Shown here in pieces: positions 3,268 through 54,759 of a stretch of 64,000 nucleotides of DNA. The notes under the pieces were generated by a model that was not told the origin of the DNA, made no database searches, and was given only the letters and a program-made list of their open reading frames with translations. This DNA is from Vitrella brassicaformis CCMP3155 (lineage: Eukaryota > Protista > Chromerida). The DNA is taken from NCBI GenBank assembly GCA_001179505.1, contig CDMY01000341.1, positions 1 through 64,000 on the forward strand, given 5' to 3'. Both the position numbers and the translations under genes were made by a program. The stretch's first letter is position 1; each line of letters opens with the position of its first letter.

Positions 3268-5175
3268 ATGCTTTTGTTCCCATCTATTCTGTCCCTTTCA
3301 GCCCTTTCCAGCAGCGCATTCGTGCAGCTACGGCAGCAAACAGGAACCTTGGGACGCTTTAAGGCCAGGCGAGTTTCTCCACTCATGACATCTCGCCCGC
3401 TGGAGCTGTGGCTGGACGCACGAGCTGACAAACAAATCGGCAAGCAAAGCTATCCATTCAACAGAGTGCTGTACGCTGGGCACACAGCCATCCCTGAGTT
3501 GAGAGATGAGGACCTCATGGAGATGGATGGAGTGCTGAGGAAGGGAATCAATGAGGTGGGCAAGGTGGTCAAGATCATTCAGCCCGAGGACCAGAACGAG
3601 GGCAAGAAGCTCATTGGATCTGTGGAATGGATTGTGATTGACTGCGACGGTACGACTGGACACAAAGCGCACATGCGGGCGCGCACAGGAGCAAAACACA
3701 CATGGGTGACTTTGTGTGCGTGTAGATTGGGTGCAGATCCCTGGCGAGAACATGGTGGCGGCAAGCCACCAGACGCCCACGCGGATCTGTGCCGTCGTCA
3801 CGGACGCCTCGCAGATACAGGGGCTGGCCTTCTCACTGCAGGTGGGTCAGCCGCTCATCGGGGTGTGTTTAGGCACATGTCTTTTCATGGGCTGTTTGCT
3901 TTGCACATGTATACTGTAGTTGGGTGTGGATGCGCTGCTGCTGCCGCCAGACCAGGCCATGTGGAAGGCCGCTTTGGAGGCGCGCACCACGAGGGGCCAG
4001 GGCACCCAGCCCACCAACGCAGAGGCATCTCAGCCCTCTGCAAAGGTATTGGACGAGGCGTGCATGCTGATGGGGAATGGTTTGATTCATTGTTTTCATT
4101 CACTCAGGGGGTCGCCAGTGCGCACAGCGGGCTTCGGTTTGCTCGTGTGGTGTCTGTGAGTGATGGAGGTGTCGGGGATCGTGTCTGCCTGGACCTCATC
4201 CAGAACATGCGGCACGGCGAGGGCGCTCTGGTAGGCTACGTACTTGGGCTCTCACCACCCACTACCACCAGAGGGCCATCTTAAGCTTATGTCCGTCTGC
4301 GTGCAGGTGGGCTCCAGTGCAATGAGGCTGGCCTTCGTGCATGCTGAGACCATCCCTGCGGGGTTCGTGCCGGCCCGACCGTTTCGCATCAATGCCGGCC
4401 CCGTGCACGCCTACTGCCTGATGGGCGACGGCAAATCCACCAAGTACCTGTCTGAAATACAGGTGGGCGGGGCGGCTGTGAGTGACGTCAGCCAGCAACA
4501 AGGACGGCCGTGTGTGCTGCTGCATGGTGTGTGCATGAGTGTGTGTCAGGCCGGCGATGAGATAGCGGTGGTCAGTCTGCCTGCAGGGGCCGACGGGAGT
4601 GTCACGTCGCGTGCAGTGTCGGTCGGAAGATGCAAAGTCGAGCGGCGGCCGGTGCTCAAGGTCATCTTCCAGGTGACTGCCTGCCTGCCTGCCTGCCTGC
4701 GTACCCAGGGCAAGCACTTCAGTGACCTGCTTTGCTGTCATTCTGTGCGTGCATGGCCGTGTCAGATTGAATCAGCAGATGGCACGGCAGCCCCATCAGC
4801 CGGCAACGTGAGACGAGAAACGACACGATGGAGATCCATTTGTGACTCCTCCATGTGTTCCCTCTGTTGTCCTCCTTCTCTGCAGGTGTTTCTGCAGCAG
4901 GCCGAGACCGTGAGGCTCCTGAAAAGGGACGAGGGCACTGAGAGGCCCTCGGGCGAGCACGCCTTCCTGCTTCCTGGTGGAGGTGAGGGTGAGTCGGTGT
5001 GTTGGGTGGTGCCGGTCTCCATCACAAGCCTCAAAGCAGGTAGCTGCAGACAGCATGGTCGGTGCTCCAGTCGATGTGTGTATGTGCTCTTCCAGGCGAC
5101 AGCATATTGGTTCGAGGACAGTCAGTGGGGACGCATCTGGGGCAGCCCATCGATGCCAAAGTGGTCGAGATTTAG
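3268..5175 (+). CDS. 3-dehydroquinate synthase type II (archaeal-type DHQS family), probably plastid-targeted, multi-exon
   Basis: Motifs QIPGENMVAA, VGDRVCLDLIQNMRHGEGALVGS, FVHAETIPAGFVPARPFRINAGPVHAY, KYLSEI, GRCKVERRP, FLQQAETVRL and PVSITSLKAGDSILVRGQSVGTHLG...VVEI* (TAG at 5173-5175). Leader MLLFPSILSLSALSSSAFV. Confidence 0.88.
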
Positions 5176-5633
5176 CGTGTCTCATTCATCAGATTCCGTA
5201 TCATTCATGCCTTCCCTGTTTTGTTCCAAAAATCGATGGAGGGCAATGCAGAACAGACAGATGCCTGACTGTGTGCCTGCCCTTGCTCTTGCTCTGTCTG
5301 CATTGCCTTCCTTGGATCTTGCTGCCTGGGGGAAAGCAATTTGTGTGAGTGTGTGGATGGACAAACAAATGGTCGGACGGATGGGTGGATGCGACGGGCT
5401 CACTGACTGACTAGCTGATCGGTGCTGCTTTGCATGTGACTGTGTGCGTGTACAAAATAATCTGCTTGTATGCTTCCATCTGAGTGAGAGACAGGCCGAC
5501 ACACAAGGCAGGCAGCACGGACAGCGATTGTCATCTGTAATTACAATGAGATATGATGCACACACATATCCGTCTCGATCCGACGCATGAATCACGCACC
5601 CGTGCCACTGTCCCCCTCTATCCCTTCCCTCCC

Positions 5634-7995
5634 TCATGCCAGCTTGTATGCCTCCAGCTCATCAATGTCGAAGTGCCATCCCTTCACTGACACAGGCAGG
5701 AGCACTCGGTCATCGTCATCACTGTAGTCGCTGAGCCTGACATCCGGCCACTCCCACTGGCGCCACTCGTCGGGCTGCTCGTCCTCCAGCATGGCTCCTT
5801 GGCACCGCTGCATGGTCTCGTCGCTGGCTGCTGCTGGGGCGCCGATCTGGGCGGCCTGACGGATACCGAAGCTGAAGCATGCCGTGTGGAGGACGGCCGT
5901 CAGCTCAGACTCAGCCGATGAGAAATCGATGAACTCGGTGACTCTCTCCTGCACACACGGAGAGAGAGACCATTGGCTACCATGACTCCCTTGCTCATTC
6001 AGGTGGGTACCCACCTGTGTGCCCGCGATGCAGATGATGTCGTGCTGGCCGATGTAGCCCACGTGTGGGTGGCTGTCTGTCCCCTGCAGCTTGAAGCCGA
6101 AGGCTCTCGTGTCGGGGCGGCTCTTGGCCGTGCCGGTGACCTCGATGGGCCCCTCGATGATGACGGCGAAGAGCTCATTGCTGCCGGCCACCTTGGAGAT
6201 GAGCAGCAGGGGGGAGTGGCCCTTGACGGCATCGAAGAAATCCAACCACCTCCAACCATTCACAGTCGCCCTGACACGACACACACACGCATCAAGACAC
6301 AGAGGCATGGTGAGAGAGTGCCGGCATGCTCACATCTGTCTGGCCTGCCCTTCTCACTTGTATATGCGCATGACCGGGTCGCCCACACACGACGGGATCT
6401 GTGCCGGTGCGGGCAGCCAACCGTCACACCACTGCCGCATCTTGAGCAGGTGCTCGGTGGTCAGCAGGCCGTCAGCCGGTCCCAAATGGCGATCGCTATC
6501 CAAACCGTACCTGACACACACAACACACACACCCACGGAGAGAGAGAGAGAGAGAGAGAGCAGCCGTCGGGTCATTGTGTGGTGAGCACTCTTTTCGCTG
6601 TTACATGGTGAGTGCGTGTCGGTATTTGTTGATGGCCAGATCACCCATCGCCCCCCGCACGTCAGCCGCTGTGATGGTTGCCCCCTTCATGTGGGCACGA
6701 GATACGACATCGACAATGCGCCGGACATGCTCGATGGGCGCACGAACGGTAGGGCCGTACCTGACACGACAGACAGACAGACAGACAGACAGGGGATACA
6801 AGCGAGCTCTCAAAAGGCCCAAGTCTGTGCAGGCGCACCTGATGAATCTGTTGGCAAAGGTAGAGTCGTCGCCCAGCGATTTCGCTACACCTATCGTCAC
6901 CGTCACCGTGGATCCCGACACACTCGCTGACACCAACTGAAGAGGGCAACCACAACCACAATATGCAGTCAGTGCATCTCCTCTGATCCCCTTCCCTCAC
7001 TGTGTCCAGCTCACCGTATCGTCCTCCACATTGCCCGTCTTGAGTAGTGGCTTGATGGCATCCAGCCGCTGCTCATGTGCGGCCTTCTCCTCCAGCGCCT
7101 TCTTCGTCAGCCTGTGCAGCTCCGCCGTCAGCCTCAGCTGAGCCGCGGCGGGCTGCCCGGCATCCTGCTGCTGGTCCGTGGCTGGGTCGGCAGCGGGGAG
7201 GAAGGCGTCGCCACCGGGCCGCCGCTTGTGTGAGGGGTCCCACAACAGCAGCTCAACCCAGTACCTGACGACACACATCATCGGCTGCATTGGACCGTCA
7301 CGTGTGTGTGGTGGGCCTGGTGCTCACGTGAATGGCGTGTCGTGTTGCTTGGCCGGGGGGATTGCAATGTTGTCCACCTGCTCCTCCTCATACATAATCA
7401 GATTCATCACCAGCCTGCATCCCGCCCAACACACACGCACACACACAACACACACGTGTGTGTGAGAGAGATGACATGATGAATGAATCCATCACTGAGC
7501 CCTCCTGACTTGACCAGGTGAATGCAGGTGGCCAGATCGGCAAAAAATGCGATCGTTCTCGTCATGGATAAACGCAGCGTCAAATTTGCCACCGAAGAGG
7601 GTGGCGAGCACCGAGTTCTTGACCGCACAGAGAGTCGATCGCTGGACCCGCACCTGCTCGCCGCTCACATTCAACTCCAACACATCCTTCATCAACTCTT
7701 CCTGCACACTACAACACACACAAACACACGCGCGATGAATGCATGTCCTCGACTGCCTTTCCGCTTTCTGGTCCATCTCGCTCACCATTGGTTTGTTTGG
7801 CGCTGCAGCAGACCCGCCCAAGGCTCTTTGGCGCTCCTCCAGCTCCTCCAGCATGGCTTGCAGCGCGTCGGTGACGCTTCGGCTGTACTGGATGGACTGA
7901 TGCAGCGCGCCGAGGGAGGCGCTCTCACCAACAGCGCCGCCATCAGGACACCTGCGTTTCTCGCCAACTGCTGCAGCAGCAGCTGATGCAGCCAT
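5634..7995 (-). CDS. BTB/POZ (KCTD-type) + C-terminal TLDc-like protein, copy 1; apparent -1 frameshift at 7542-7547
   Basis: BTB: VLELNVSGEQVRVQRSTLCAVKNSVLATLFGGKF...DENDRIF. TLDc-like: RIYKATVNGWRWLDFFDAVKGHSPLLLI...WHFDIDELEAYKLA*. Compared with copy 2, one base is missing in a T6 run, which is either a pseudogene lesion or a homopolymer error. Confidence 0.75.
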
Positions 7996-9021
7996 CTATC
8001 GCAGGAGAAATCACAATGCCCTACAGTGACAATGCCAATGCATTCATCGCATTTCTCCTGAACGCTCCGCTCAAACTGTTTCACGCTCGGATTTGTTTCA
8101 CCCTGTGAGCTCGCCCTTCTGCTTCTCTTCTTTTCCGCCGTTCTCCCCTCTTTCATGCTGCCGTCAGCTGCCTGGACGTCCTGATCTGCCTGGACGTCGA
8201 AGTTCGACGCCATGCCGCCCCTCCGCATTTTCTCTCTTTCGCTGTCAGGGCAGCGTGAACACCCCAGCACAGCTGCAAGGTGGCAGGTGTGCATGTGCAC
8301 GGCAGAGAGCATGCACACAAGGTGGCAGGTGTGCATGTGACCGGATTCTGTGCTGCTTAGGTGGTGCTGATCAGCGTCGAGGGTGTTGTCAAAGGAGCAC
8401 AGCAGCGGCACGGCGGCAGCGGGCAATGAGACCGCCACACGACGTCAGATGGCAAGGTGAGACACGGCATGCAGGACAGGTGTGTGAGTGTCCCGCTTTC
8501 ACTTTCACGTGCATGTGCATGTGTGCGTTTTCAGATAACTGACTGGGTGCTACTCGTCCACAACCACAACGACACACATGCAAGGTACACACGACACACA
8601 GCCACAATGCAACACAGGACAATCCCATCCTGCCTCTCTTTCACCCTCATGAAGGTTCGTCCGGACGAGGCAAGTAGGTCGCATACCAAAGGACAGTGGT
8701 GCTGTGCTGCCGGAGTTGGCAGGTACGTACGTCAGGAAGCCAGATAGATGCACTCACTGGGCGTGGACGTGTTGTGTGGCTGCATGTGTTGTGTGCGTCT
8801 GTCTCTTCAGGCAGGTGTTGTAGGCGAGCCCTGGGGACCACCCTGCCATCCACTGAGATCTCCCTCGTCCACCCACTCACCCAAGGATCTTCTTCTCTGT
8901 CTAGCTAGAGTGAGTGTTGTGGTTTTTGCGTACTTACTGGTGCATGGCATGGTGGGGCTGTCCTGTCGGGGAGTGGCTGCCTGTCGCGTGTTTATACGAA
9001 TTCTTTCGGCTGTTGTGCTTT

Positions 9022-10798
9022 CCCTCCGCTCCGCTGTGTTGGCCGTCCGGGCGTCTGCTGCGGTGCTGGCGGAACAGTCCACAGGGTCTCGACGGCAATG
9101 CAGTATGTGCCGGTCAGGGTACTGCAGCGGAGGGAAGAGAGAGACGAGTGCTGGACTGTAGGCTACTGCACATTCCTGTCGTCATCTGACGGGCGGGCAC
9201 TGCACAGAGAGCGATGCTTCATTGAGTTGGGTTGGGTTGACATCCGATTTTTGTGGTGTGACTTCGTTGCCCACAGCTGAGTCCTATCGGTGAGATGGCG
9301 TCTTCGTCATGAGTGGTGCATTTTGCTTGGGTTCTGTATGCCTTGTGCTGTGCGTGACCCCCTCGTGCCCTCATGTACGGTCTCTGCGAAGTGCGTCTCA
9401 TTGCTGTGCGGGCAAACGCATAGCGATGACACGTGCTGTGCGGCGGCCTGACATGGGGCACGAGGGGGGCACCGTACCACGGCAAACAGTGAACACCCCA
9501 CCTCTATCCGTGAGTCTTCGCTTCACGTGGCAGAGGATGGGTGGATGCGTGTGTGAGCGCCAGGGCAGAAAAGCCGAGGGGTGTCTTTTCTGCCTCTCTC
9601 GAGTGGTGTGGTGTGGTTTATGTGTGTTTGCTGGTGCCTGTTGTGCCTGTCCGTCATTGTATGGTGTCTCCTGCGCTGTCCCTCCGCTGTGTTGGCCTGG
9701 CGGGCGCGTGCTGCAGTGCTGACGGGACATCACACACGGTCTCGACGGCAATCTTGCACGTGGCTGACAGGCCAATGCAGCGGAGGGAAGCGAGAGACGA
9801 GTGTCATTACGTCACTGCCTTCGCTTTCCACAGATGAGTGCCGCACCGCAGGCTAAGGCTATTCTGTTCGCTGGCTATTCTGTCTTCATCATCACTGGTA
9901 CATTATCTAGCTTGAGTCGCGTGTGTATGCTGCTGTGCGTGACCCCTCGTGCCCTTATGTGGGATAGCTGGGGGCGAACGTCTCATTGCTGTGCGGGCAA
10001 ACGCGCTGCAATGACACGTGCTCTCCAGCGGCCTGACATGGGGCGTGAGGACGGCAAAACGCCGCCTCGCTTCAAGTCAGACGTGGGCGCCAGGGCAGAA
10101 ACGCCGAGGGTGTGGGTGTCTTTTCTGTCTCTGCAGAGTGGTGTGGTCGGTGTGGTTTATGTGTGTCTGCTGGTGCCTGTCGTGTGTCTGGCGGTCATTG
10201 TATGCTGTCTGTCTGTCTGTCTGTTGTGCTGTCCCTCCGCTGTGTTGGCCTGGCGGGCGCGTGCTGCAGTGCTGACGGGACACCATACACCGTCTCGACG
10301 GCAATGCTTCACACGGCTGTCAGGCCAATGCAGCGGAGGGAAGCGAGAGACGAGTGCTGGAAGCCAGCTCATGATCAGCGCTTTCTCGAGAGCAGTCAGT
10401 GGCTGCTCCTCTATGGTGTGGCCACACGCATCAGTCCGTCCATGTGGGTGGGGGGGGTTTGGCGGTTCGTTGGCATGGTTGTCGGACTGTTTTCCGCGTG
10501 TGTGTGGTGTTGATGGGATGCGACCACTTTTGTAGTCATGTCTGGGTGGCCGGCTGAGTCGACAGAACCAGTCACCCACTCCATCAGGGAGGGATTTCAC
10601 ACACTTGTGGATTGGTGTGCTGTTGACTGGGTGGGGTGGGTGCATCAATCAGTGGTGCTAGGCTGTACTGTGTATCCTTTGTGGTGTGCGTGATCCACAT
10701 CATGCCCCCATGTCAGGCCTGGTTGGAACGCTTCATCGCTGTGCAGTCATTTGCACGGCTGTGACACGTGCCCGTCAGGGAAAGGACATGGGGCATGA
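9022..10798 (+). ncRNA. Candidate structured-RNA cluster: six alternating long hairpins (family T1 at 9022-9134, 9680-9787, 10233-10340; family T2 at 9358-9468, 9945-10050, 10700-10798)
   Basis: By manual pairing each unit folds into an extended stem-loop. T1 outer stem: ccctccgctgtgttggcctg / caggccaatgcagcggaggg, 20 bp with 2 G-U. T2 upper stem: tcattgctgtgcg-ggcaaa-cgcatagcgatga, 13 bp. Copies differ by compensatory or wobble changes. No known RNA family recognised and expression is unproven. Confidence 0.5.
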
Positions 10799-11542
10799 GA
10801 ATGGCACCGTACCACGGCCGACATGAGCGGCAAACAGTGGCCCGGCCTCTATTCGTCACTGTCGTGGGTTTTGCATCACAAAAGGTTCCGTTCATCACAG
10901 ACGAGTTTTGTAGTGATGGTTTGTGTGCTACGGTGTACTGCTGCGTGTACGTTCCTGCACTGCCTGAGATCGGACGGATCAGCTCAGTGTCTCTGTCTCT
11001 GTCTCTGGCGCATTCGAGCGCCTCCAGTCTGTCTGAGCACGTGGACCCAGCCGATCTACGATCGTTGTTTACAGCAATGCCTGTCGCCTGATAGTCGAGC
11101 GACTAGATGTGACAGACATACACAGATGTCCTGCTTGCTCTGTGCCTCACACGCTGTTTTGTTGGCCGCCGGCACGTAACGCGCCCATCTTGCTCATCCA
11201 TCCTGACGCAAGGGAAGAACGGACATTGTGGGAGTGACGGGCTCAGACAGAATCGCTGGTGTTGGGTATATAATGAGTGAAGACTGGATGCTGTGGCTGA
11301 ATGGCATGGCTGGCAGTATGTGCCGGCACAGTGAGCTGTGGGTTGTGAGGAGGAAGACCAACTTGTGACGAATGAAGCCATTCTGTCGATGTGTCTCCCT
11401 CCTCTGGCTCACAGCTAACGACGACAAAGGCCTAACTAACGACACCGCTCTCTGCATAACCACCCCCGCCCGCCTAGGCCTTGCTTGCCGACGCGACACC
11501 CTACCAGCCCACTCCAAACGCACAAGCATACTCACACTCACA

Positions 11543-14500
11543 TCAGTTCAAGTGTGAGGTGGAAGGCGGCCTCGAGAGAGCTCTACAGTCATTCAAATGC
11601 GGTACTGCAGAGCTCTTCGAATCCACCATCCAGGACACACTCGACCGACGTCGTGCACTGCTCTGCACACATCACCATGTATCATCCCTCATTGACACCT
11701 GCACACATCACACCCATGCCATGCCATGCCACCATGGATGAGAGAACAAGCGCTGACATCGGCGCCCTCTCCCCTCCCCAGCTCAGCCAGCTTACGTTGC
11801 ATGAGGAACTGCAGCTTGGCCACGATCTCCGCGCACTGCGTGGCTGTATCTGCTTCGTACTCGACCTCCAGCTGTCGATCGGCCACCTTGCCGCGGCCAC
11901 CCTGATCGCGGCCCTCGCCCCAGCCCCACGACGTCTTGCGGGACACGCCATCAGCCGACTCAGGCGACACGGCCCTCTGATGCACACACACGTACATCAA
12001 ACAAAGAGGGGGCATTGTACAATGGTGTCATCTTGGGTGTGTGTGTGCGGCTTTCTGTGACCTTTCTGTAAGTGATAGCGAAAGCGCGTGGTTTGTCTGG
12101 TATGCACTCAGCGGTGACGATGTCGCTGATGTGCCAATCGACCAGCGACGTCTCGGCCGCCGACCCCTCCGCTGCTGTCAGTGCTGCGGCAGCCGCAGGC
12201 ACGCTCTCTCCCCTCCGATTAGCTATGCGCCGAAACTGGATGATGGAACAGCAAAGCACCCACACAAAGATAATGAACAACGTCCCCTGTCTGTGTGCCT
12301 CGTTTACTCACTGACCAGTGGCCCCCAGAATCCTCCCCCTCTCCATCCAGCGCTTCGCTGAGGTGCGGGTGGCGGTGTGGTGGGCGGATGTGCCATGGCG
12401 AAGGGGTCTGCCGTGGTGGCGTCGGCCTGTGCGGGCGGCAGAGGGGAGTGGGCGCCGGATTGCGGTGGCGGCGGTGGGGGTGCGAAGGGTAATGCGGGCG
12501 AGGGCAGGAGGGGGCTGTTGGTGTTGGAGGGCGTCTGGGTGGTCGACATGACGAGGGGCGTCACCTTGTGATAAACACGGTTGCGGTCCACAACAAATAC
12601 CTACACAAAAGGAGAGAGGATGGTCCCATCGTCTGCCTGTCCGTCTGTCTGTCTGTCTGTCTGTTGCTTACACATGGTCTTGGCTTGGCTGCCGGTGCGG
12701 TGGCCGGCGTGGTGGGTCCGTTTGGCGGCGACAGCTGCAGCGACGGTGGGGGTGAGGTGCTGCGGACAGTGACATGCAGGTGGTACTCCGACGCGATGGA
12801 GGCCGTGTACTCATTGAACAGAAACATCGACAACGGAGGCCTGCACACACACACAGAGGTCAAACATGTGCCTTGCATCCCTCCGGGTGATCCGAGTGAT
12901 CTGTGTGGGTTAGTGTACTTACCTGACTTCCTTCCCAGCCAACTCAGCCTGAGCAGTGGACCTCTCTGTGCGGCGCGGTGCGGCCGACGACAGACATACA
13001 TACACGCCAGCCACAGCACAGTGAGTGACGACACGGCACCTGTCTGTCTCTCGCTCTGTCTCTGGCCTGCCTACGTTGTGGGCTGTCCTTCCTCACGAGC
13101 CGCAAGCTCCTGTCCTGCTGCGGGATGTCCTTGACCTGCCACCCCATCTGCAGACGCTGCGGGCGACCCATCACAACTCGCTGACACCACACACACCAAA
13201 GCACACCACAACAGCATGGCAGACCCATTCATCCATGCGAGCATCGACAGCTGCAAACCTCAAAGGCCATAGTGGCGGGTGTGAATGCCTCGTCCCTCTG
13301 CCGTGCCACGAGACTGAGCAGGTCGAACAGCCGCGACTCCTCGCTGATCTGCACCACTGTTCGGGGCTGCTGGTCTGCGGTTGGGGCGTCCGACCCGACG
13401 GCTGGCGTCTCTGCCGGAGGACCGATCACTGTCAACACCTGACAAACAAGTAGAGCAGACCGAGAAGGCTCTCTGTGTGTGTCTCTCCGACCGACCCACC
13501 CGTGTTTTGGAGCCGATGCTGAGGACGTCCGAGGCGCACCGGATCATGCCGCCCCCCTTGGCGGCCGCCGCCTCCTCCTCCCCCTCCCCATGTGGAATTG
13601 TTGCCCTCTGCCGCCGACCCCTGCCGCCCACCTGCTGGCCCGGTGTGGGCGAGCTGCTCTCCGCACCCTCCATCTCATCGCTGCTCGTCCGCACCTTGGG
13701 GTGGTACATGACGCTCAGACTGCCCCCTTGGCTCTGGATCCGGCGGTGACCCAGCAGGCCTTTGCCGTCACCACCAACCCAGGATTGCACACGGGGCGGC
13801 GGGGGGATGGGCGCCGGAGGTTGCGTCTGCGGCAGGTGTCTGCTGGCTGGCGTGGAGGGGCCGGGGGGTGGGGTGCCCAGCAGGAGATTGGGGTTGGACG
13901 CGAAGGTCACGCTGGCGTTTTTGGATTGACGGGGTCTCGGTTGGGCGGCGCCTGTGCTGGTGGGGGACGTGTCGGGCGACCGCGCTGACATGGCTCGACT
14001 GGACTGACGGTGACGCGGAAGACTCGCAGGTGTCGGGGCCTGACAACAGGCAGGCAGGCAGGCAGGCAGGTGTGTTGCGCCGTGTGTCCCCCTCTCTATG
14101 TTATGTATGTTTGTGTGATGGATGGCTGGCCACTGACCTCGAAAACAGGCTGGCTGATTGCTTTCTTCATGAGCTTCTCGTCGGACGACTTCCGGGCCCG
14201 CGCCTCTATCTCCAGCTCCGACACGCGCCGTGGCGACGCCATGACACTGGGAGGCGTCCTGGGTCCCGCCCAGCCCTTGACGCCACCCACGCCCCCGACC
14301 ATGGTCGGCCACTCTTCCTTCTGCTTCTCCTTGTCCTTCTCCTTCTCCTCCTTCCGCGCCTCCTTCTCGCTCCCCGTCGAGGATTTCCTCTCTGCCTCTT
14401 CCTCCTCCTCCTGGATGGCCGCCTCGGTCGGCAGGAAGCCCCCCGACCCTGCACGCGATCCGCGCCTTGTCAGGGGGAAAAGGGTAGATGGGGGCGGCCC

Positions 14501-22040: not shown

Positions 22041-23478
22041 GTGATGAACCAATCGGGGGGGAGGGCGTGTGTGTGTATGTGTGTTTGTATGTGCTGTGCT
22101 GTGTTGTTCCCATCCATCGGTTTCGGCTCCTGAGATCCGCCTGATGCGATTGCCCACGTCATGACGGACCTTGGTGAGCGGAACTGATTGACGGAAGAAC
22201 ACAACACAACACAACACACGCGCACGGTGTGTGACCCGTCGGCGGCATGCAGTCACTCACTGGTCTGTCTGGCCCGCCCACACACCAGACCAGACCAGAC
22301 CAATCATTCCCCCATATATTCACACGGGCCTGTGTGTTTTTGTGTTGTTGCCCTCGTGCGAAAGGTTGCCTGACTGCAGTGGAGTGCAGTTGTGTGGTGT
22401 CGTTGGTGTCATCATGTCTCGTGAGAGCCCTTGAAGCAAACATTCATGGTGTCAGCCACAGCCAATCTGTGTGGTGGGTGGGTTGACTCGACAGACATCG
22501 TTGGCTTGGTTGAGTCGAATCGGTCGAATTAGGTCACTGTGAGGCAGTCAGTCAGTCAGTCATATAAGCAGACAGTCGTCCATCTGTCCATCCATCCATA
22601 TATCCGAACCCATGAACCCATCCTCCCCACGCACCCCAGATAAAAGGCGGGCGCCAGCACATCACAGCTCCACACACCTCGACACATCCACACACGCATT
22701 CACACGTCATCAACCACCTGATGTATATATAGGATGGGGTGGATTCGGTCGGCCTGTCTCGTGGCGTCCGTCTTGTCTGTCCGTCACCAAAGCTGCCTAC
22801 ATGAACGGCACCGACTCCACTCGTGTGTGTCGCCGGCGCTGGTCGCCGTCGGCCGCCAGTGGCAACGAGCAGAGAGACGGACCACACACATGTTCGTTCA
22901 CACATACACACCACACGTCCCGTCGTTGTCTTGTCGATTGGCGCAACTCTCATCGTCGGTCAGGAGAGAGCAAAAAGGAACGACCACGGCAGGCAGGCAG
23001 GCAGGCACAGCACATCTGGCTGGCTGGCTGGCTGGCTGGCTGAGAGAGGAGGGGGCTCCTGGGTGAGTGGGGGTCAGCATAGCATAGCACACGTAACATC
23101 AGCCATACAGGCAGACAGACAGACAGACAGACAGACAGGCGGACAGGCAGACAGTTCAAAAACACACACACCACACCACACACATTCAGTGACACGGCAC
23201 ACACAGGTACGTGCCCCCCGCCCCGCCCCCCCGCTCAGCTAGGTCATTCACAGACAGCTGCCCACCGGCAGGCACCATCCAAGGCCCTCCCGCAAACACG
23301 AAGTCATACGTGGGCCACATTCATTGTCGCGTCAAAATGCCAGGCGGCAGGGATAGAGACATGGCGGTGGCGTGTGCGTGCGGTTGTGTGCAGTGCGTGT
23401 GGCGCACGGGGGAGGGGCGGGAGGAAAGGGGTATGTGTGCTCTGTAGAGTGAGTGACTGGTTGAGTCAGTGGAGTGGG

Positions 23479-26341: not shown

Positions 26342-28364
26342 ATGGCACATCCGAGATCAGCAGCCATCTCCCACTCAGCAGCCTCAGGGACGGCACGGGA
26401 GCCGATCTGTCCACGAGCCGATGCACAAGACGCCGACGCCCCATGTGCGCCATCATCTCGTGCAGCATGCCCTCACCGACGACAGACAATCGCGTCGCGG
26501 TCTGTCTTGCCCCTTTCTGCCGTGTTTGTGGCTGTCGTGCTCGCTACCACCGCTCAGTTAGCCCACTGCATCGACAGGGGAGCCTTTCTGCGGCCATTTA
26601 CGGGCAGCATGACGACGCCTGCGCGGCGATTGGAGAGGATGCGGCAGCATCTGCACCCGGCGAGGCGGCCTTCTGATCTGTTGAGGACTCGGCTGTTGAT
26701 GGCTGACGATGAGGACGTGCAGACGGTGACCACGGACTCGGTGACCAAGGACTACTACAAGATCCTCGGGGTCGACAGGGGGGCATCCAAGAAAGAAATC
26801 ACCAAACGGTGCGTGCGCCATGCCGTCCGCCTGTGTCGCGTGTGGAACCATCTGTAGGTTTGTGTGTCCATGTGATGTGTGTCAGGTACAAGGATCTGCT
26901 GCGCGAGTTTCACCCCGACTTCGGCGGCGACAAGTACGTCATGATGGAGCTCAACGAGGCCTACGAGGTCCTCGCTGACGACGCCAGGCGAGAGGTCTAC
27001 GACCGCACCGGCCAGGCACCACCCTCCGCCGAGCAGCAGCAGCAACAGCAGCAGCAGCAGATGGCCGGACAGCCGACCGGCGGATGGCAGGAGATCGGAT
27101 TCAACGACATATTCGACACATTCTTTGGCGGCGGCATGGCCGGCGGTTAGCTTAGCGAGGCAAAGCCCCACCACGCAGAGATGCGCATCGCATCATCAAT
27201 GTGTGTTGTGTTGTCAGGTCGGCGTCGTCGGGCAGCGCGTCGCGGCAGTGATTTGAAGGTGGAGCTGGAGGTTGACTTCGCCACTGCCGTGTTTGGTGGG
27301 ACGGAGAAGGTGCGGCTCAAGCACGTGGAGACGTGTGAGGTCTGCATGGGGACCGGCGCCGCGCCCGGCACCAAACCTGTCGTATGCCCCACCTGCAACG
27401 GACAGGGCATGGTCTTCCAGGTCAGACGACAAATGCCCGGGGCGGAGGGGACTTGTCTGTCTGTCTGTCTTCTGTTGTGTGTGGGGTGTGCGGCGCGGCG
27501 CGTGTTGTGTGTGCAGGAGCAGCGGACCCCCGTTGGGTACATATCTACCGGATCGACGTGTCCCACTTGTGGCGGTGTGGGCGAGATCCTCGCGGACCCT
27601 TGCCCTGCGTGCAACGGACAGGGCCTCGTGCAGAGGACCAAACAGATTGACGTGAGCGAGCTGAGCGGACACATACAATACACACGATAGATACCGAGCG
27701 ACACACAGACAGACAGATGTATATATGCACGCTGATCTGATCCACCCCCCCGTCAGGTGGCTGTGCCGGCTGGTGTGGAGGAGGGCATGAAGCTGCGCAT
27801 CAAGGGGGAGGGCGACGCCGGCATGAACGGGGGCGAAGCGGGAGACCTGTAAGCAAACCATGCCATCCATCCATCCACTCGTGTGTGTGTCCGGCCCACC
27901 CATCAGGTTTGTGTTTGTCAAGGTGCGTCCGGACTCCCGCTTCACGCGCAAGGGGACGTCCATCTTTTCTGAGACCACCATCTCGTACACCGACGCCATC
28001 CTGGGCAAGACGGTCGATGTGGAGGTCATCGACGGCACCGAGCCCGTCAGGATCCCACCCGGCACACAGCCCGGCACCACCATCAAGGTCCCCGGCAAGG
28101 GCGCGCCAAAGGTCGGCATCCCCGACTTTCGCGGAGACCATTTCACCACCGTCAAGGTCGGCACGGCACGCCGTCTGTCCGTCTTTGTCTACCCTCTGGT
28201 GGATGGATGGATGGATGTCATCTCCGTGTGTGTGTTGTTAGGTGGAGATCCCCACGAGTGTGTCCGGTCGTGAGCGTGAGTTGATTGAGGAGCTGGACAG
28301 GCTGCGGCCGTCATCAGGGTCGCGCGAAGAGGGTGGGAGGGGCAAACGCTTTTTCGGATTGTGA
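26342..28364 (+). CDS. dnaJ: Type I DnaJ/Hsp40 (J domain, zinc finger, C-terminal domain), probably plastid-targeted
   Basis: DYYKILGV...[11 protein letters not shown] (HPD motif) and four CxxCxGxG repeats ([32 protein letters not shown]). C-domain: [20 protein letters not shown]...[20 protein letters not shown]. Hydrophobic segment [23 protein letters not shown] precedes GAFLRPF. Start codon uncertain. Confidence 0.92.
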
Positions 28365-36025: not shown

Positions 36026-36885
36026 CTGACCGACCAATCGACCGGGGGCCTTTCCCCAAGGTGTGTGCTGTGTGCAGCCAGCCCGCTGTTTGTGTTTAGC
36101 GGTACTGCTCGAAGGCATCGTGACAGAGACGATGAAGTGTCTGTCATTACACCTTCTAGCAGCCCGTCTGAACACAGAGAGTGGCGTGGCGCGCTGAGAA
36201 AAAATGTGTATGGCCAAGAAACCCTAACACTTGGACTGATGGACGTGTCCCGTCTCTATGTGAGTGTGAGAATGTTTGTGCGTTTGGAGTGAGTGGGTTG
36301 GTGCGTCGTGTCGGCAAGCAAGGCCTAGGCGGGTGGGGGTGGTTAATGCAGAGAGTGGTGTCGTTAGTTAGGCCTTTGTCGTCGTTAGCTGTGAGCCAGA
36401 GGAGACACATCGACCGACTGACTTCATTCGTCACAAATTGGTCTTCCTCACAACGCACTCACTGTGCCGGCACACACTGCCAGCCATTCGAATTCATCTG
36501 CGTATGCCTCATCTAGTCGCTCGACTATCAGGCGACTATCAGGCGACAGGCATTGCAATCATTGCTGTAAAGAACAATCGGAGATCCGAAGGGTTCACGT
36601 GCTCAGACAGACTTGAGATGCTCGAATGCGCCAGAGACAGAGACAGAGACACTGAGCTGATCCGTCCGATCTCAGGCAGTGCAGGAATAATGCACACGCA
36701 GCACTACACCGGCGGATGGGGGGCAGACGTGTCCCTCCCTCCCTCACTCCGTAGCACGCAAACCATCACTACAAAACTCGTCTGATGGACGGAACGTTTT
36801 GTGATGCAAAACCCACGACAGTGAGGAATAGAGGCCGGGCCGGCCATTGTTTGCCGCTCATGTCGGCCGTGGTACGGTGCCATCC

Positions 36886-38637
36886 TCATGCCCCATGTCC
36901 TTTCCCTGACGGGCACGTGTCACAGCCGTGCAAATGACTGCACAGCGATGAAGCGTTCCAACCAGGCCTGACATGGGGGCATGATGTGGATCACGCACAC
37001 CACAAAGGATACACAGTACAGCCTAGCACCACTGATTGATGCACCCACCCCACCCAGTCAACAGCACACCAATCCACAAGTGTGTGAAATCCCTCCCTGA
37101 TGGAGTGCATGGCTGGCTCTGTCTGTGTGAGTGGGTGGCTGGTTCTGTCGACTCAGCCGGCCAGCCAGACATGACTACAAAAGTGGTCGCATCCCACCAA
37201 CGCCACACACACGCGGAAAACAGTCCGACAACCATGCCCACGAACCGCCAAACCCCCACACAACACGGACGGACTGATGCGTGTGGCCACAGGATACAGA
37301 GAGAGACCTGACTGCTCTCGAGAAAGCGCTGATGATGAGCTGGCTTCCAGCACTCGTCTCTCGCTTCCTTCCACTGCATTGGCCTGCCACGCACGCACTT
37401 CATTGCCGTTGAGACGGTGTATGGTGTCCCGTCAGCACTGCAGCACGCGCCAGCCAGGCCAACACAGCGGAGGGACAGCACAGAGCAGACAGACAGACAG
37501 ACAGACAGCCACCATGCAATGACCGACAGACACACGAAAGGCACCAGCAGACACACATGAAGCACACCCACACCACTCTGCAGAAAAGACCGCTCTGACT
37601 GAAAGCGAAGAGTTACGAAAAGATGTGAGGCGGCGTTTTGCCGTCCTCACGCCCCATGTCAGGCCGCTGCAGAGCACGTGCCATTGCAGCGCCTTTGCCC
37701 GCACAGCAATGAGACGTACACCCAGGGCTGATGACATAAGGGCATGAGGGGTCACGCACAGCAGCATACACACGCGACTCAAGCTAGTGTACCACTGCTG
37801 ACGAAGACAGAATAGCCAGCGAACAACCGATAGGAATGTGTGGAAAGCGAAGGCAGTGACGTAGTCGCACTCGTCTCTCTCTTTCCCCCGCTGCAGTTGC
37901 CTGTCATGCACGTGCTATATTGCCGTCGAGACGGTGTGTGATGCCCCGTCAGCACTGCAGCACGCGCATGGAAGGCCAACACAGCGGAGGAAAAGCGCAG
38001 CAGACACCATACAATGACGACAGACACAACAGGCGCCAGCAAACACACATAATCCACACCCACATCACTCGAGAGAGGCAGAAAGACACCGCTCGGCTTT
38101 TCTGCCCTGGCGCTCACACATGCATCCACCCACGTCTGCGTGAAGCGAATCTACAAATTGAGGTGGGGTGTTCACTGATTGCCGTGGCACGGCGCCACCC
38201 TCATGCCCCATGTCAGGCCGCCGCACAGCACGTGTCATCGCTATGCGTTTGCCCGCACAGCAATGAATCGTACCGAGCTGAGACCACATGAGGGCACGGG
38301 GGGGGACTCGCAGCACAAGGCATACGCAACCCAAGCAAAATGCACCACTGATGACGAAGACGCTATCTCACCGATGGAAGTCATCTGTGGGCAACGAAGC
38401 CATACCACAAAAATCGGATGGCAACCCAACTCAATGAAGTATCGCCCTCTGTGCAGTGCCCGCCCGTCAGATGACGACAGGAATGTGCCGTAGCCTACAG
38501 GGACGTGATCGCACTCTCGCCTCTCGCTTCCCTCCGCTGCAGTCACCTGCCAGGCACATACCACATTGCCGTCGAGACGGTGTGGACTGTCCCAGCAGCA
38601 CTGCAGCACACGCCCGGAAGACCAACACAGCGGAGGG
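36886..38637 (-). ncRNA. Second copy of the six-hairpin cluster (T2 36886-36984, T1 37367-37474, T2 37645-37749, T1 37883-37993, T2 38199-38302, T1 38530-38637)
   Basis: Same stems as in 9022-10798 on the minus strand. Two T1 units are exactly 108 nt. There are compensatory changes relative to the copy-1 counterparts. Confidence 0.5.
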
Positions 38638-39620
38638 ACAGCACAACAGCCGAAAGAATTCGTATAAACACGCGACAGGCAGCCACTCCCCCCCGACAGG
38701 ACAGCCCCACCATGCCACGCACCACTAAGTACGCAAAAACCACAACACTCTAGCTAAGCTAGACAGAGAAACAGATCCTTGGGTGAGTAGGTGGACGAGG
38801 GAGATCTCGGTGGAGGGCAGGGTGGTCCCCAGGGCTCGCCTACAACACCTGCCTGAAGAGACAGACGCACACAACACAGCCACACAACACGTCCACGCCC
38901 AGTGAGTGCATCTATCTGGCTTCCTGACGTACCTGCCAACTCCGGCAGCACAGCACCACTGTCTGTCGTTTGGTATGCGACCTACTTGCCTCGTCCGGCC
39001 GAACCTGCATGAGGGGAAGTGAAAGAGAGGACAGGATGGGATTGTCCTGTGTTGCGTTGCGGCTGTGTGTCGTGTGTACCTTGCGTGGCGGGATAAATGG
39101 ACGAGTAGCTCCCAGTCAATCATCTGACAACGCGCACATGCACATGCATGTGAAAGCGGAACGCTCACACACCTGACCTGCACGCCGTGTCTCACCTTGC
39201 CATCTGACGTCGTGTGGCGGTCTCATTGCCACTGCCGCCGTGCCACTGCTGTGCTCCTCTCACAACACCCTTGACACTGATCAGCACCACCTAAGCAGCA
39301 CAGAATCCGGTCACATGCACACCTGCCACCTTGTTCAGATGCTCTCTGCCGTGCACATGCACCATTCAGCTACCTTGAAGTCGTGTGGGGTGTTCACGCT
39401 GCCCTGACAGCGAAAGAGAGAAAATGCGGAGGGGCGGCATGGCGTCGAAGGGACAGGCCAGTGGGCAGATCAGGACGTCCAGGCAGCTGACGGCAGCAGG
39501 AAAGAGGGTAGATCGCAGAAGGGCGAAACAAATCCGAGCGTGAAACAGTTTGAGCGGAGCATTTGGAGAGGATGAATGCATTGGCATTGTGATTTCTCCT
39601 GCGATAGCATTGTTCAGAAG

Positions 39621-41972
39621 ATGGCTGCATCAGCGGCGGCTGCTGCAGCAGCTGGCGAGAAACGCAAGTGTCCTGATGGCGCTGTTGGTGAGAGCGCCTC
39701 CCTCGGTGCGCTGCATCAGTCCATCCAGTACAGCCGAAGCGTCACCAACGCGCTGCAAGCCATGCTGGAGGATCTGGAGGAGCGCCAAAGAGCCTTGGGC
39801 GGGTCTGCTGCAGCGCCAAACAAACCAGTGGTGAGCCAGATGGACCAGAAAGCGGAAAGGCAGTCGAGGACATGCATTCATCGCGCGTGTGTTTGTGTTG
39901 GTTGTGGTGTTGTGGTGTGCAGGATGAGTTGATGAAGGAAGTGTTGGAGTTGAATGTGAGCGGCGAGCAGGTGCGGGTTCAGCGATCGACTCTGTGTGCG
40001 GTCAAGGACTCGGTGCTCGCCACCCTCTTCGGTGGCAAATTTGACGCTGCGTTCATCCGTGACGAGAAGGATCGCATCTTCCTGCAGATCTACCCACCTG
40101 CATTCACCTGGTGAGGAAGGCCTAGTGATGGATTTATTATGTCATCTCTCTCACACACGTGTGTGCGTGTGTTTGTGTGTGTGTGTTTGGCGGGCTGCAG
40201 GTTGGTGATGAATCTGATTATGTATGAGGAGGAGCAGGTCGACAACATTGCAATCCCCCCGTCCAAACAACACGACACCCCATTCACGTGAGCACCAGGC
40301 CCATCACACACACATGACGGTCAAATGCAGCCGATGATGTGTGTCGTCAGGTATTGGGTTGAGTTGCTGCTTTGGGATCCCTTCCACAAGCGGCGGCCGG
40401 GCGGCGACGCCTTCTCCCCGCTGCCGACCCAGCCACGGACCAGCAGCAGGATGCCGGGCAGCCCTTTGCGGCTCAGCTGAGGCTGACGGCGGAGCTGCAC
40501 AGGCTGACGAAGAAGGCGCTGGAGGAGAAGGCCGCACATGAGCAGCGGCTGGATGCCATCAAGCCACTACTCAAGATGGGCAATGTGGAAGACGATACGG
40601 TGAGCCGGACACAGTGAGGGAAGGGGATCAGAGGAGATGCACTGACTGCACGTTCTGGTTGTGGTTGCCCTGTTAAGCAATTGGTGTCGACGAGTGTGTC
40701 GGGGTCCACGGTGTCGGTGACGACAGGCGTAGCGAAATCGCTGGGCGACGACTCTACCTTTGCCAACAGATTCATCAAGTTCGCCTGCACAGACTTGGGC
40801 CTTTTGAGAGCTCGCTTGTATCCCCTGTCTGTCTGTCTGTCTGTCGTGTCAGGTACGGCCCTACGGTTCGTGCGCCCATCGAGCATGTCCGGCGCATTGT
40901 CGATGTCGTATCTCGTGCCCACATGAAAGGGGCAGCCATCACAGCGGCTGACGTGCGGGGGGCGATGGGTGACCTGGCCATCAACGGATACCGACACGCA
41001 CTCACCATGTAACAGCGACGAGAACACACAGAGCTGCTCACCACACAATGCCCCGACGGCTGTTCTCTGTCTGTGTGTTGGTTTGTGTCAGGTACGGTTT
41101 GGATAGCGATCGCTATTTGGGGCCCGCTGACGGCCTGCTGACCACCGAGCACCTGCACAAGATGCGGCAGTGGTGTGAGGGCGAGGAGGACGCCCCCGCA
41201 CACATCCCCTCGTGTGTGGGCGACCCGGTGATGCGCATATACAAGTGAGAAGGGCAGGCCAGACAGATGTGAGCATGCCGGCAGTTTCTCGTCATGCCCG
41301 TGTGTCTTGATGTGCATCCCATGTCAGGGCGACTGTGGATGGGTGGAAGTGGTTGGATTTCTTCGAGGCCGTCAACGGCCGCTCCCCCCTGCTGCTCATC
41401 TCGAAGGTGGCCGACAGCAATGAGCTCTTCGCCATCATCATCGAGGGGCCTATCGAGGTCACGGGGACGGCCAAGAGCCGCAGCGACACGAAATCGTACG
41501 CCTTCAAGCTGCAGGGGACAGACAGCCACCCACACGTGGGCTACATCGGCTGGAACAACAAGATGTCAATCGCGGGCACACAGGTGGGTGCCTACCTGAA
41601 TGAGCCAGGCAGTCATGGTGATGGTCTCCTCTTTATCCATGTGTGCAGGACAGAGTCACTCCCCTCATCGACTTCATTTCACCCGCCTCCTACGCGACGG
41701 CCGTCCTCGCCGCTGCATCTTTCTACTTCGGCGTCCGTCCGGCCGCCCAGATGGGACAGATCGGCGCACCAGCAGCAGCCAGCGATGAGATCATGAAACG
41801 ATGCCAGGGAGTCGTGCTGGAAGAAGAGCAGGCCGACGAGTGGCGGCAGTGGCATCGGCCGAGTGTGAGGCTCAGCGACTACGGCGGTGACACTGACGCA
41901 GTGCTCCTGCCTGTGTCTGTGAAGGGATGGCACTTCGACATTAGTGAGCTGGAGGCATACAAGTTGGCGTGA
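39621..41972 (+). pseudogene. BTB/POZ + TLDc-like gene, copy 2; two apparent -1 frameshifts
   Basis: Paralog of 5634-7995. Single-base deletions relative to copy 1 near 40277 (gacacccattc vs gacacgccattc) and near 40412 (gccttctcccc vs gccttcctcccc). Confidence 0.65.
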
Positions 41973-42741
41973 GTGAGGGAAGGAGGGAGGGGGACGGTGG
42001 CACGGGTGCTGGATTCATGCGTTGGATCGACACGCGCTTTGTACAGATGACAGTAGCTGTCGGTGCTGCCTGCCTGTGCGTCGGTCTGTCTCTCACTCAG
42101 ATGGAAGCATACCAGCAGCCAAACCGCCATTCACACGCAATTGAGCAGCACCGATAGTCAGTCAGTGAGTCCATCCTTTGGGTGGACTCTATCTGTTGGT
42201 TTCTGCGTAGTCTGTCTGTCGAGCGTGTGTGGTTGAAATGGACAAGGGCGGGTGGATGAGTGAGTGGGTGAAGGAGATTTCTTGCCGCCAAGCTCTAGGC
42301 TGTACACATGGGTTGAATGAACCACACAATGAACGAACGCATGAAGACGGACACCACTCCACTCACACACACAGATGGTCTCACACATGCGCACACAGAC
42401 ACAGACACATTGAATGTGTACCATGGGGCCATCCAGCCATCCAGCCAGCGCACAGATATTGACATCATCTACACAAGAGCCGCCCTCCTGCTGCAGCCAG
42501 CAGCCACTATGTGTGTGTGATCTGAACCACACAGACAACCAAACACAGCCGTGAGCAGCAGCAGAGAGGCGGTGGTCTGCGAGTCGCCTTGCGTACCTAG
42601 CTCTATGTGAGATGGTTGCTGCTGCTGTCCTCCTCGTCCATCTCATCGACACTCCTGCCAGCCAGCCAGACAGACAGACAGCCATGTGTGTACTCATGCA
42701 GAGAGCCCCCATCCACCCCTCCCCTCCCCTCCCCCCTCAAC

Positions 42742-53700: not shown

Positions 53701-54440
53701 TCATGGCGGCGATGGAGAGACACGGCCTGGCGATGGAGCCCATGATGCGGCTGCATGACGAGCATGGCGATGGGTCGTGCATCCCCAGTCCCTCTGTGAT
53801 CGCATCCGCCGCTCAGCTGATGGCCGTACTGCAGAAGACGGACAAACAAATCACAGCCATCGAACTGCTCTACAAGTAAGAGAAAATGAATGCGAAGAAA
53901 ACAGTATAGACTGAGTTGTCTCGATGTCTCCTTATGTGGTTGCAGAGCGACTGAGCACGGCTTTGCATACACCGACATGCTTAGCCGTGTGGGCCGTGCG
54001 AGCCCCCTGCTGTTCCTTGCTCGCGCAAATGGAGACATGCACGGCTTTTTCATCGACACCAGCCTGCAGCCGGCCACAGCACTGCACATGGAGACCCCCA
54101 ACGGCCCGCGGGCCTTAAATCATTATGAGGCGGCCTGTCTCATCTTCAAGGCATCCACAGCCGCTCCGCCGACCTTCCAGTCGCCTCAGTGACGCTCCAG
54201 TGCGTCTCGGTCTCGCGAGCACACAACCAGCCGTGTGGAGTCCGAGCTAAGGTGAGGCTGGGCCCCTTGGTCGGCCGTGAGTGGCTGGGGCTGTGGGCGC
54301 CTGCTCCTCTGGAATGGGTGCAGAGTGCGGCTGATGGGCGGTGCTGGGTGCGTGTGGGATGGTAGCAAACAGTGGTGATGGGATATGAGACGCACAAGCT
54401 CGTTGCTGACGAGATAGAGGTGTTCAGACTCATGCAGTGA
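50720..54440 (+). pseudogene. Paralog C: unknown N-terminal/LRR-like region + C-terminal TLDc-like domain, disabled
   Basis: In-frame TAG at 51428-51430 where A/B have TCG. A -1 frameshift near 51722 and another near 54185 relative to paralogs. TLDc-like: LLYK|ATEHGFAYTDML...HGFFIDTSL...VADEIEVF. Confidence 0.7.
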
Positions 54441-54759
54441 GTGAGTTGGGTGAGGGGTGAGGGGGGGCGGGATGGAGAGAAGGTCGGGATGGATGAGGGA
54501 AAGGGGCGGTAATTATGCGTTGGTCGCTTCCGGATTTGTTGGAAGAGACCGATCTAGACGGGACAGACCGTTACATGGCCTTCAAACGTTTCAGTGCTCA
54601 CGTGCGTGCACATGAATGTCTCCGAGGAATATTGTATCCATTTGTTGAGAGGCCAACTACGACACTAACGCGTAAGCCCCAAAAAGCAGCAGGTTCGAAA
54701 AAGTAGCCATGCAGCAGGCCATGGTCTCCTTGCAGATGAACGATCCATCCCACGCCAAA

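Follow-up and report, generated by a model that had tools for sequence, protein, structure and literature searches.

The 64,000-nt stretch of Vitrella brassicaformis CCMP3155 analyzed here (contig CDMY01000341.1; hereafter the window) contains six copies of a long hairpin, designated T1, three in each arm of an inverted duplication; five of them are 108 nt and one is 113 nt in length. Together with at least two distant relatives found by a covariance-model search of the genome, X1 and X2, they make up a family of at least eight members, with ~47-49 opposed positions and lengths of 108-130 nt, at three loci. We consider with good confidence that T1 is an RNA hairpin under structural selection. 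Its role is assigned more tentatively: the reading we put forward, at slightly less than even confidence, is that T1 represents a hitherto undescribed Vitrella family of long RNA hairpins with imperfect stems, which forms a small-RNA-precursor array, and the narrower claim that T1 itself is a small-RNA precursor is a little more doubtful. In the literature, we found no small-RNA genes described for chromerids and no small-RNA paper on Vitrella. An earlier, sequence-only reading of this DNA had proposed a hairpin that pairs at the RNA level, with a conserved 23-nt guide strand in the 5' arm (the 23-mer) and a freely varying star strand opposite to it. The first part of this proposal stands, based on the strand asymmetry, the excess of G-U over A-C combinations and the compensatory changes relative to X1 and X2, whereas the second part does not.

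Folding and Strand Asymmetry of the T1 Hairpins

Every T1 copy is a symmetric hairpin with position i opposite position 109-i, and standard pairs occupy 39-44 of the 49 opposed positions. The minimum free energy (MFE) z-scores range from -4.6 to -8.0 in five of the copies, and that of A1, which was folded with its flanks and its 5-nt duplication, is -1.2. In each of the six copies the array strand has a folding advantage of 13-23 kcal/mol over its reverse complement, and with the two relatives included this advantage amounts to 13-25 kcal/mol in 8/8 hairpins. Across the six T1 copies there are 52 G-U cells versus seven A-C cells, and four G-U pairs are common to all six. Two mismatch sites are also kept in every copy: 37·72 is always G·A, and the combination at 43·66 never pairs. 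Within positions 25-47 the six copies have two to six unpaired positions and no asymmetric bulge, as in the few-mismatch duplex of a microRNA (miRNA).

The unit sizes given by the sequence-only reading were correct, including the 5-nt CCGCT duplication that brings A1 to 113 nt, and a single coordinate had to be moved by one position (B2 is at 37884-37991, not 37883). The array is non-coding: the lengths of its indels, only one of which lies inside a T1 hairpin, are not multiples of three, and the possibility that the 23-mer is part of a spliced coding exon, which the same reading had raised, is therefore rejected.

Distant Relatives of T1

A covariance model built from the six T1 copies was run on the whole genome (72.7 Mb in 1064 contigs, ~58% GC), and a broader model was then used for rescoring. 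With the broader model, X1 and X2 score 104 and 92 bits, respectively, and exceed every reverse-strand match. Each run scored only 150 candidates out of a first look that gave more than 20,000, and the family may therefore have more members. BLAST of the genome returned no T1 copies beyond the six, and the 2.3-kb array used as a query matched only its own two arms; a pattern search of the 72.7 Mb found no further copy of the 23-mer at up to three mismatches, and a 19-mer scan of metagenomes gave eight chance matches, none of them T1-like.

T1, X1, and X2 agree, without gaps, over ~71% of the 5' arm. They also have in common the basal stem, a 3' tail rich in purines, and the core CTGCAGTGC, which is identical in 8/8 members. 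X1 and X2 fold with ~44-47 pairs and z-scores of -4.1 and -3.8, with bulges of 1-2 nt present; X1, with 11 G-U pairs, exceeds its own reverse complement in stability by 25 kcal/mol. The two loci are paralogous, being 84-87% alike across ~1.6 kb, and in each of them the hairpin lies between an unassigned open reading frame (ORF) and an opposite-strand gene, which at the X1 locus has a weak TLDc match. The ORF at X1 is on the same strand and lies ~560 nt 5' of the hairpin. Paralogs of the gene beside X1 are also found in the window, at 53541-54555 (-) and 55048-55669 (+). For T2, the second hairpin family of the array, no similar element was detected beside X1 or X2, where alignment scores remained inside the shuffle range.

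Compensatory Changes and Selection on Pairing

Between the T1 consensus and X1, 22 pairs are the same, eight have changed on one side and are still paired, and seven (positions 3, 17, 22, 24, 28, 29, and 31) have changed on both sides and are still paired; eight positions are unpaired in X1. Ten of the 13 substitutions from T1 to X1 at paired sites of the 5' arm are paired in X1 versus ~4 expected, a binomial probability estimated at ~0.002. In the alignment of all eight sequences, double changes are present in seven pairs (reached by 5 of 500 shuffles) and in nine cells (0/500), the covariation score is 0.245 versus 0.201 (3/500), and 90.5% of cells are paired, versus 36-49% with the partners slid. 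RNAalifold independently predicts the same hairpin from these eight sequences.

Computing covariation over all copies had been suggested in the sequence-only reading, and with the relatives included the signal beats the shuffled controls, whereas the six window copies by themselves fail this check: they hold two double changes, both in B2, a number reached in 167/500 shuffles. Their paired cells amount to 91.9% versus 91.4% in shuffles. Within the six copies, selection on pairing is at most weak. The change from A2 to B2 that had been described as an example (G:G, G-C, and G-U becoming G-C, U-A, and A-U) is correct and corresponds to positions 25, 24, and 23. Two other statistics were discarded. 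A test based on the MFE after random mutation was withdrawn, as starting from one living copy double-counts the changes of that copy and falsely rejects neutrality, and an unpolarized count of both-paired versus one-paired changes is biased and not significant (~51% observed vs. an estimated ~45% under neutrality).

The Hairpin Array in an Inverted Duplication

The six T1 copies lie in a ~6-kb inverted duplication with arms, A and B, that are 86.5% identical and ~25 kb apart (table 1). Both arms include a gene with a BTB_2 domain and a weak TLDc match, encoded opposite to the hairpin array, and both arrays have the order T1, T2, T1, T2, T1, T2, followed by one extra hairpin; T2 is unrelated to T1 in sequence family. 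The hairpins are read on the forward strand in arm A and on the reverse strand in arm B, and the region is G+T-rich on the array strand throughout. Arm-to-arm mismatch over the array, taken as the background, is 10.0% (184/1846 sites), with transitions about as frequent as transversions. Arm-to-arm identity is a mosaic of 100% blocks among blocks of 55-85%, a pattern that seems to indicate ongoing conversion.

Table 1. Coordinates of the duplication arms, the hairpins of the array, and the distant relatives of T1. Positions are those of the window unless a contig is given; energies are MFE values of the array strand versus the reverse complement.
Feature	Position	Strand	Remarks
Arm A	5462..11543	+	BTB and weak TLDc-like gene on - strand (~7995 to 5634); hairpin array on + strand
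Arm B	36258..42118	-	Inverted duplicate of arm A
T1 A1	9022..9134	+	113 nt; CCGCT duplication (5 nt) near 5' end; -56 vs. -43 kcal/mol
T1 A2	9680..9787	+	108 nt; 23-mer 9704-9726; -76.4 vs. -52.9 kcal/mol; z = -8.0
T1 A3	10233..10340	+	108 nt; 23-mer 10257-10279; -79.2 vs. -61.6 kcal/mol
T1 B1	38530..38637	-	Positional counterpart of A1; 44/49 positions paired, 14 of them G-U
T1 B2	37884..37991	-	Counterpart of A2; 23-mer 37945-37967; both double compensatory changes of the six copies (pairs 1-108 and 24-85)
T1 B3	37367..37474	-	Counterpart of A3; 23-mer 37428-37450
T2 copy 1	9357..9472	+	-94 kcal/mol; z = -9.7
T2 copy 2	9944..10052	+	Second hairpin family, alternating with T1
T2 copy 3	10694..10806	+	Mostly within block 10591-10790 (100% identical between arms)
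Extra hairpin, distal array end	11330..11421	+	z = -4.4
X1	C341:109327-109453	+	Covariance-model match
X2	C535:51923-52053	+	Covariance-model match; 5-nt duplication

A 200-bp block of the array (10591-10790 vs. 37093-36894) has 100% identity in the two arms, compared with ~86% for the arms otherwise. It spans most of the third T2 hairpin plus sequence 5' of that hairpin, and represents either recent gene conversion or else strong constraint. Immediately 5' of T1 A3 there is a (CTGT)n microsatellite (10205-10226), which recurs at about ten other places in the window.

T1 as a Putative Small-RNA Precursor

The T1 and T2 hairpins of one arm probably share one non-coding transcript of ~2.5 kb. 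What selection chiefly preserves is the helix, along with a small number of patches in the sequence, namely the basal stem (CGCUG.GUUGG with AGCGG), the core CUGCAGUGC together with the apical stem, and the purine-rich 3' tail. The helix would most likely be the substrate of an RNase III/Dicer-type enzyme, cleavage would provide small RNAs for the Piwi/Argonaute proteins of the genome, and the array as a whole may be a polycistronic miRNA-like or hairpin small interfering RNA (siRNA) cluster. The genome has four loci with Piwi domains above the Pfam cut-off and four loci with RNase III domains. These would be the putative effector and processing proteins, with a true Dicer among the RNase III proteins as a candidate only. 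Transcription, cleavage, and the loaded arm, if any, are steps that we only infer.

Plant-type miRNAs are recognized by a single hairpin, a duplex with few mismatches and no large asymmetric bulges, discrete reads of 20-24 nt from both arms with 2-nt 3' overhangs, and a mature strand that is conserved the most. T1 resembles the long miRNA precursors of plants and Chlamydomonas in its single imperfect stem of ~100-130 nt, in which the mismatches of the six copies are all symmetric, and it resembles their miRNA families in that its members vary in sequence and keep the helix, in a genome that encodes Piwi/Argonaute and RNase III domains. The tandem arrangement of T1 and T2 hairpins on one strand is also that of polycistronic miRNA clusters. 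In contrast to the plant and Chlamydomonas miRNAs, T1 has no near-perfect target; it is conserved most at the base and the apex of the stem, not over a 21-24-nt duplex, and no seed is common to T1 and X1. The Rfam miRNA families gave only noise, the MIR4387 match (19.8 bits vs. a threshold of 84) being on a T2 copy and not on T1.

A second comparison is with the hairpin RNA (hpRNA) loci of Drosophila that give rise to endogenous siRNAs, which are lineage-specific, repeated, fast-evolving, non-coding hairpins and proposed Dicer substrates (PMC10317233, PMC10292708). T1 is likewise lineage-specific, repeated, fast-evolving, non-coding, and a proposed Dicer substrate. The hpRNAs have extended homology to the genes that they silence, whereas a genome search with the array found no extended target homology, only a composite of 17 and 15 nt at 59137-59176 (see below).

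Several observations weigh against a small-RNA precursor. Long stable hairpins are frequent across this GC-rich window, and stability alone is therefore weak evidence. The positions of a putative seed are not kept between T1 and X1, which differ at positions 28, 29, and 31. A search of both strands of the genome at up to three mismatches gave no further match for the 23-mer, nor for the 3' strands of A2, A3, and B2, which excludes a plant-type near-perfect target. When the differences between counterparts were polarized by the other four T1 copies, half of the stem substitutions since the split of the arms were found to break pairs: 15 kept the pair and 16 broke it. The share kept exceeds the 29% expected under neutrality (one-sided P = 0.018), in favor of selection on pairing, but this value is estimated to rise to ~0.05 with the double changes counted once and to ~0.13 without them. 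The eight-sequence alignment was model-fitted, and its covariation signal comes mostly from one deep branch. Finally, Rfam searches, both with gathering thresholds and by E-value, returned nothing above threshold.

A Possible Structural Role without Dicing

An alternative is a structured RNA element with another role. Such an element might serve an RNA-binding protein as a double-stranded platform or, within a non-coding RNA or an untranslated region (UTR), act in cis as a signal for RNase III cleavage or for stability. We rate this as rather unlikely overall, and it should be noted that a non-dicing structural role fits the pattern of conservation almost as well as a small-RNA precursor does. 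Conservation falls on the helix and on the basal, apical, and 3'-tail patches rather than on a 21-24-nt duplex, the mismatches 37·72 and 43·66 are kept in 6/6 copies, the genome scan found no targets for the 23-mer or the 3' strands, and X1 could sit in the 3' UTR of the ORF upstream of it. Against such a role, an array of alternating unrelated hairpins is in general more like a polycistronic small-RNA cluster than like UTR elements, and we know of no protein partner or motif for a structured element of the T1 type.

Divergence of the Two Arms

According to the sequence-only reading, the 23-mer of the 5' arm is a selected mature guide, and its 3' partner a star strand under no constraint other than pairing. 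We regard this as improbable, and a fixed guide with a free star strand is not supported by the comparisons made here. The 23-mer is indeed exact at the four sites where it had been reported (table 1), but these represent only 4/6 copies, as B1 has three mismatches to it and A1 more than three. Likewise, in the four copies with the 23-mer its partner strand is paired at 12-14 of 16 positions, but not throughout. Among the positional counterparts (A1/B1, A2/B2, and A3/B3), 5/69 sites of the 23-mer differ (7%), which is no better than the 10% background (P = 0.55), and A1 and B1 differ at five sites inside it. Part of the apparent invariance may have another origin: A2 and A3 differ from each other at only nine sites, versus 14-15 between positional counterparts, so that the paralogs of arm A have been kept alike, which fits concerted evolution, most simply through gene conversion.

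The identity of the core CTGCAGTGC in all members and a difference between the arms do speak for a guide strand. Between counterparts, the 5' arms have 14 differences and the 3' arms 27 (P = 0.04), and in the mid-stem these numbers are 6 versus 18 (P = 0.009). The real outlier is a 16-nt tract of the 3' arm, positions 73-88, where 18/48 counterpart comparisons differ (37.5%, about four times the background), ten of these differences being in A3/B3. Changes at positions 75, 76, 78, 79, 80, and 82 are C/U and A/G toggles opposite G or U of the G-rich 5' strand, and about as many changes are pair-breaking (positions 74, 77, 81, 84, 85, and 88). The tract consists of alternating purines and pyrimidines, and small compensating shifts may inflate the number of differences counted in it.

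Over the deeper split, this asymmetry is lost. Among the mapped pairs of T1 and X1, the 5' side has 12 changed sites and the 3' side 15; as the arms change about equally, the asymmetry is local to the six recent copies and not a property of the family. X1 differs from the 23-mer at 6/23 positions, three of them in the would-be seed. A mature strand more conserved than its surroundings is thus not observed, either among counterparts (7% vs. 10%) or across the deep split (12 vs. 15 sites). The sequence-only reading had called for a scan of the transcriptome for complementary targets; a scan of the genome found no such site for the 23-mer at up to three mismatches. The 3' strand of B3 has two matches with three mismatches each, both in low-complexity GT-rich sequence, which look like chance.

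DNA-Level Palindromes and Known Classes as Alternatives

Equally improbable, in our view, is an origin of the hairpins at the DNA level, as inverted repeats that are decaying neutrally or are homogenized through template switching or gene conversion, without any RNA function. Several of the results above would be expected in this case: covariation among the six copies is not significant, 16/31 polarized stem substitutions break pairs, and the mosaic identity of the arms points to ongoing conversion. The 5-10 unpaired positions per copy are also close to a rough estimate for the decay of a near-perfect ancestor, and a G+T-rich strand alone would favor G-U over A-C combinations. Neutral palindromes do not, however, account for the seven double compensatory changes between T1 and X1, nor for pairing that is kept despite only ~70% identity of the 5' arms. 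In DNA a G·T combination counts as a mismatch; X1 nevertheless has 11 of them as G-U pairs, the six T1 copies have four in common, and all members have a one-strand advantage of 13-25 kcal/mol.

That a known class has been misread (a small nucleolar RNA [snoRNA], a miniature inverted-repeat or foldback transposon, or a spliced coding exon) is hardly credible: the tandem units with an AGA-containing 3' tail do recall the snoRNA clusters of trypanosomatids, and several ORFs cross the array, but no reading frame would be maintained across the 5-nt duplications of A1 and X2. The snoRNA classes (C/D, H/ACA, and the trypanosomatid type of cluster) were rejected on a negative Rfam search and on the sequence, in which no C/D or H/ACA boxes were seen; against the trypanosomatid type there is also the genome size of 72.7 Mb and the identity of the organism as Vitrella. 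The transposons were rejected because only eight copies at three loci were found, with no target-site duplications visible by eye.

A Composite of T1 Pieces Near an RNase III-Domain Gene

A same-sense composite matching T1 is present at 59137-59176 and consists of two pieces that are 8 nt apart. The first (59137-59153, 17 nt) corresponds to 3'-arm positions 62-70 joined to 86-93, and the second (59162-59176, 15 nt) to 5'-arm positions 22-36; outside T1, the 72.7 Mb contain no further exact match to the 15-mer, and a spacing of only 8 nt between both pieces is unlikely to have arisen by chance. The composite appears to lie in exon 1 (59025-59384) of an RNase III-domain gene (59448-61481), an exon predicted from 120 open codons with a signal-peptide-like start that are followed by a 63-nt GT-AG intron. 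The duplex energies of the T1 arms with this exon are no better than those of shuffled queries; the composite is therefore not a demonstrated target, and a relic or a chance assembly is the interpretation we prefer. A 14-mer common to the 3' arm of A1 and position 11313 was also considered and is probably due to chance, as it shows no co-variation in arm B.

The most far-reaching proposal would be that the T1/T2 array is the first miRNA-like polycistronic cluster in a chromerid and is engaged in mutual regulation with the RNase III-domain gene, a loop that could be likened to miR162 and DCL1 of plants; we consider this very unlikely.

Neighboring Genes and Other Hairpins of the Window

In arm A, the BTB/TLDc-like gene has an open reading frame throughout its last large exon (5637-6308). 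Its counterpart in arm B (41305-41969) is frame-split, with TGA stops inside, and the adjoining hairpins are intact; the arm B copy of the gene thus looks to be decaying. The C-terminal exon of this gene belongs to a family of at least 16 paralogous loci with 46-77% identity, on contigs C938, C947, C432, C371, C228, C259, and C644, several of which are clustered on C947 and C938, and many of these matches carry in-frame stops.

Further long single hairpins are found in the window at 11541-11670 (-), 36061-36190 (+), 22761-22890 (-), 27381-27510 (+), and 63001-63130 (-), with -64 to -71 kcal/mol per 130 nt and -60.5 kcal/mol for the one at 63001-63130. The first two lie at the outer ends of both arms, with the array on the other strand. 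The window also includes, at 3385-5172 (+), a gene for an archaeal-type 3-dehydroquinate synthase II with short introns, already annotated in Vitrella; the annotated protein is 100% identical to two exons in the window, and its closest named relatives are from brown algae and archaea.

Implications

The T1 copies call for caution in reading strand conservation. A pattern of one invariant and one variable strand in a few recent copies can come from gene conversion, and it can also come from the tolerance of G-U wobble pairs opposite a G/U-rich arm. Chromerids are photosynthetic relatives of the apicomplexan parasites, and the T1 family provides concrete loci for asking whether they make miRNA-like RNAs, in a genome with Piwi and RNase III domains.

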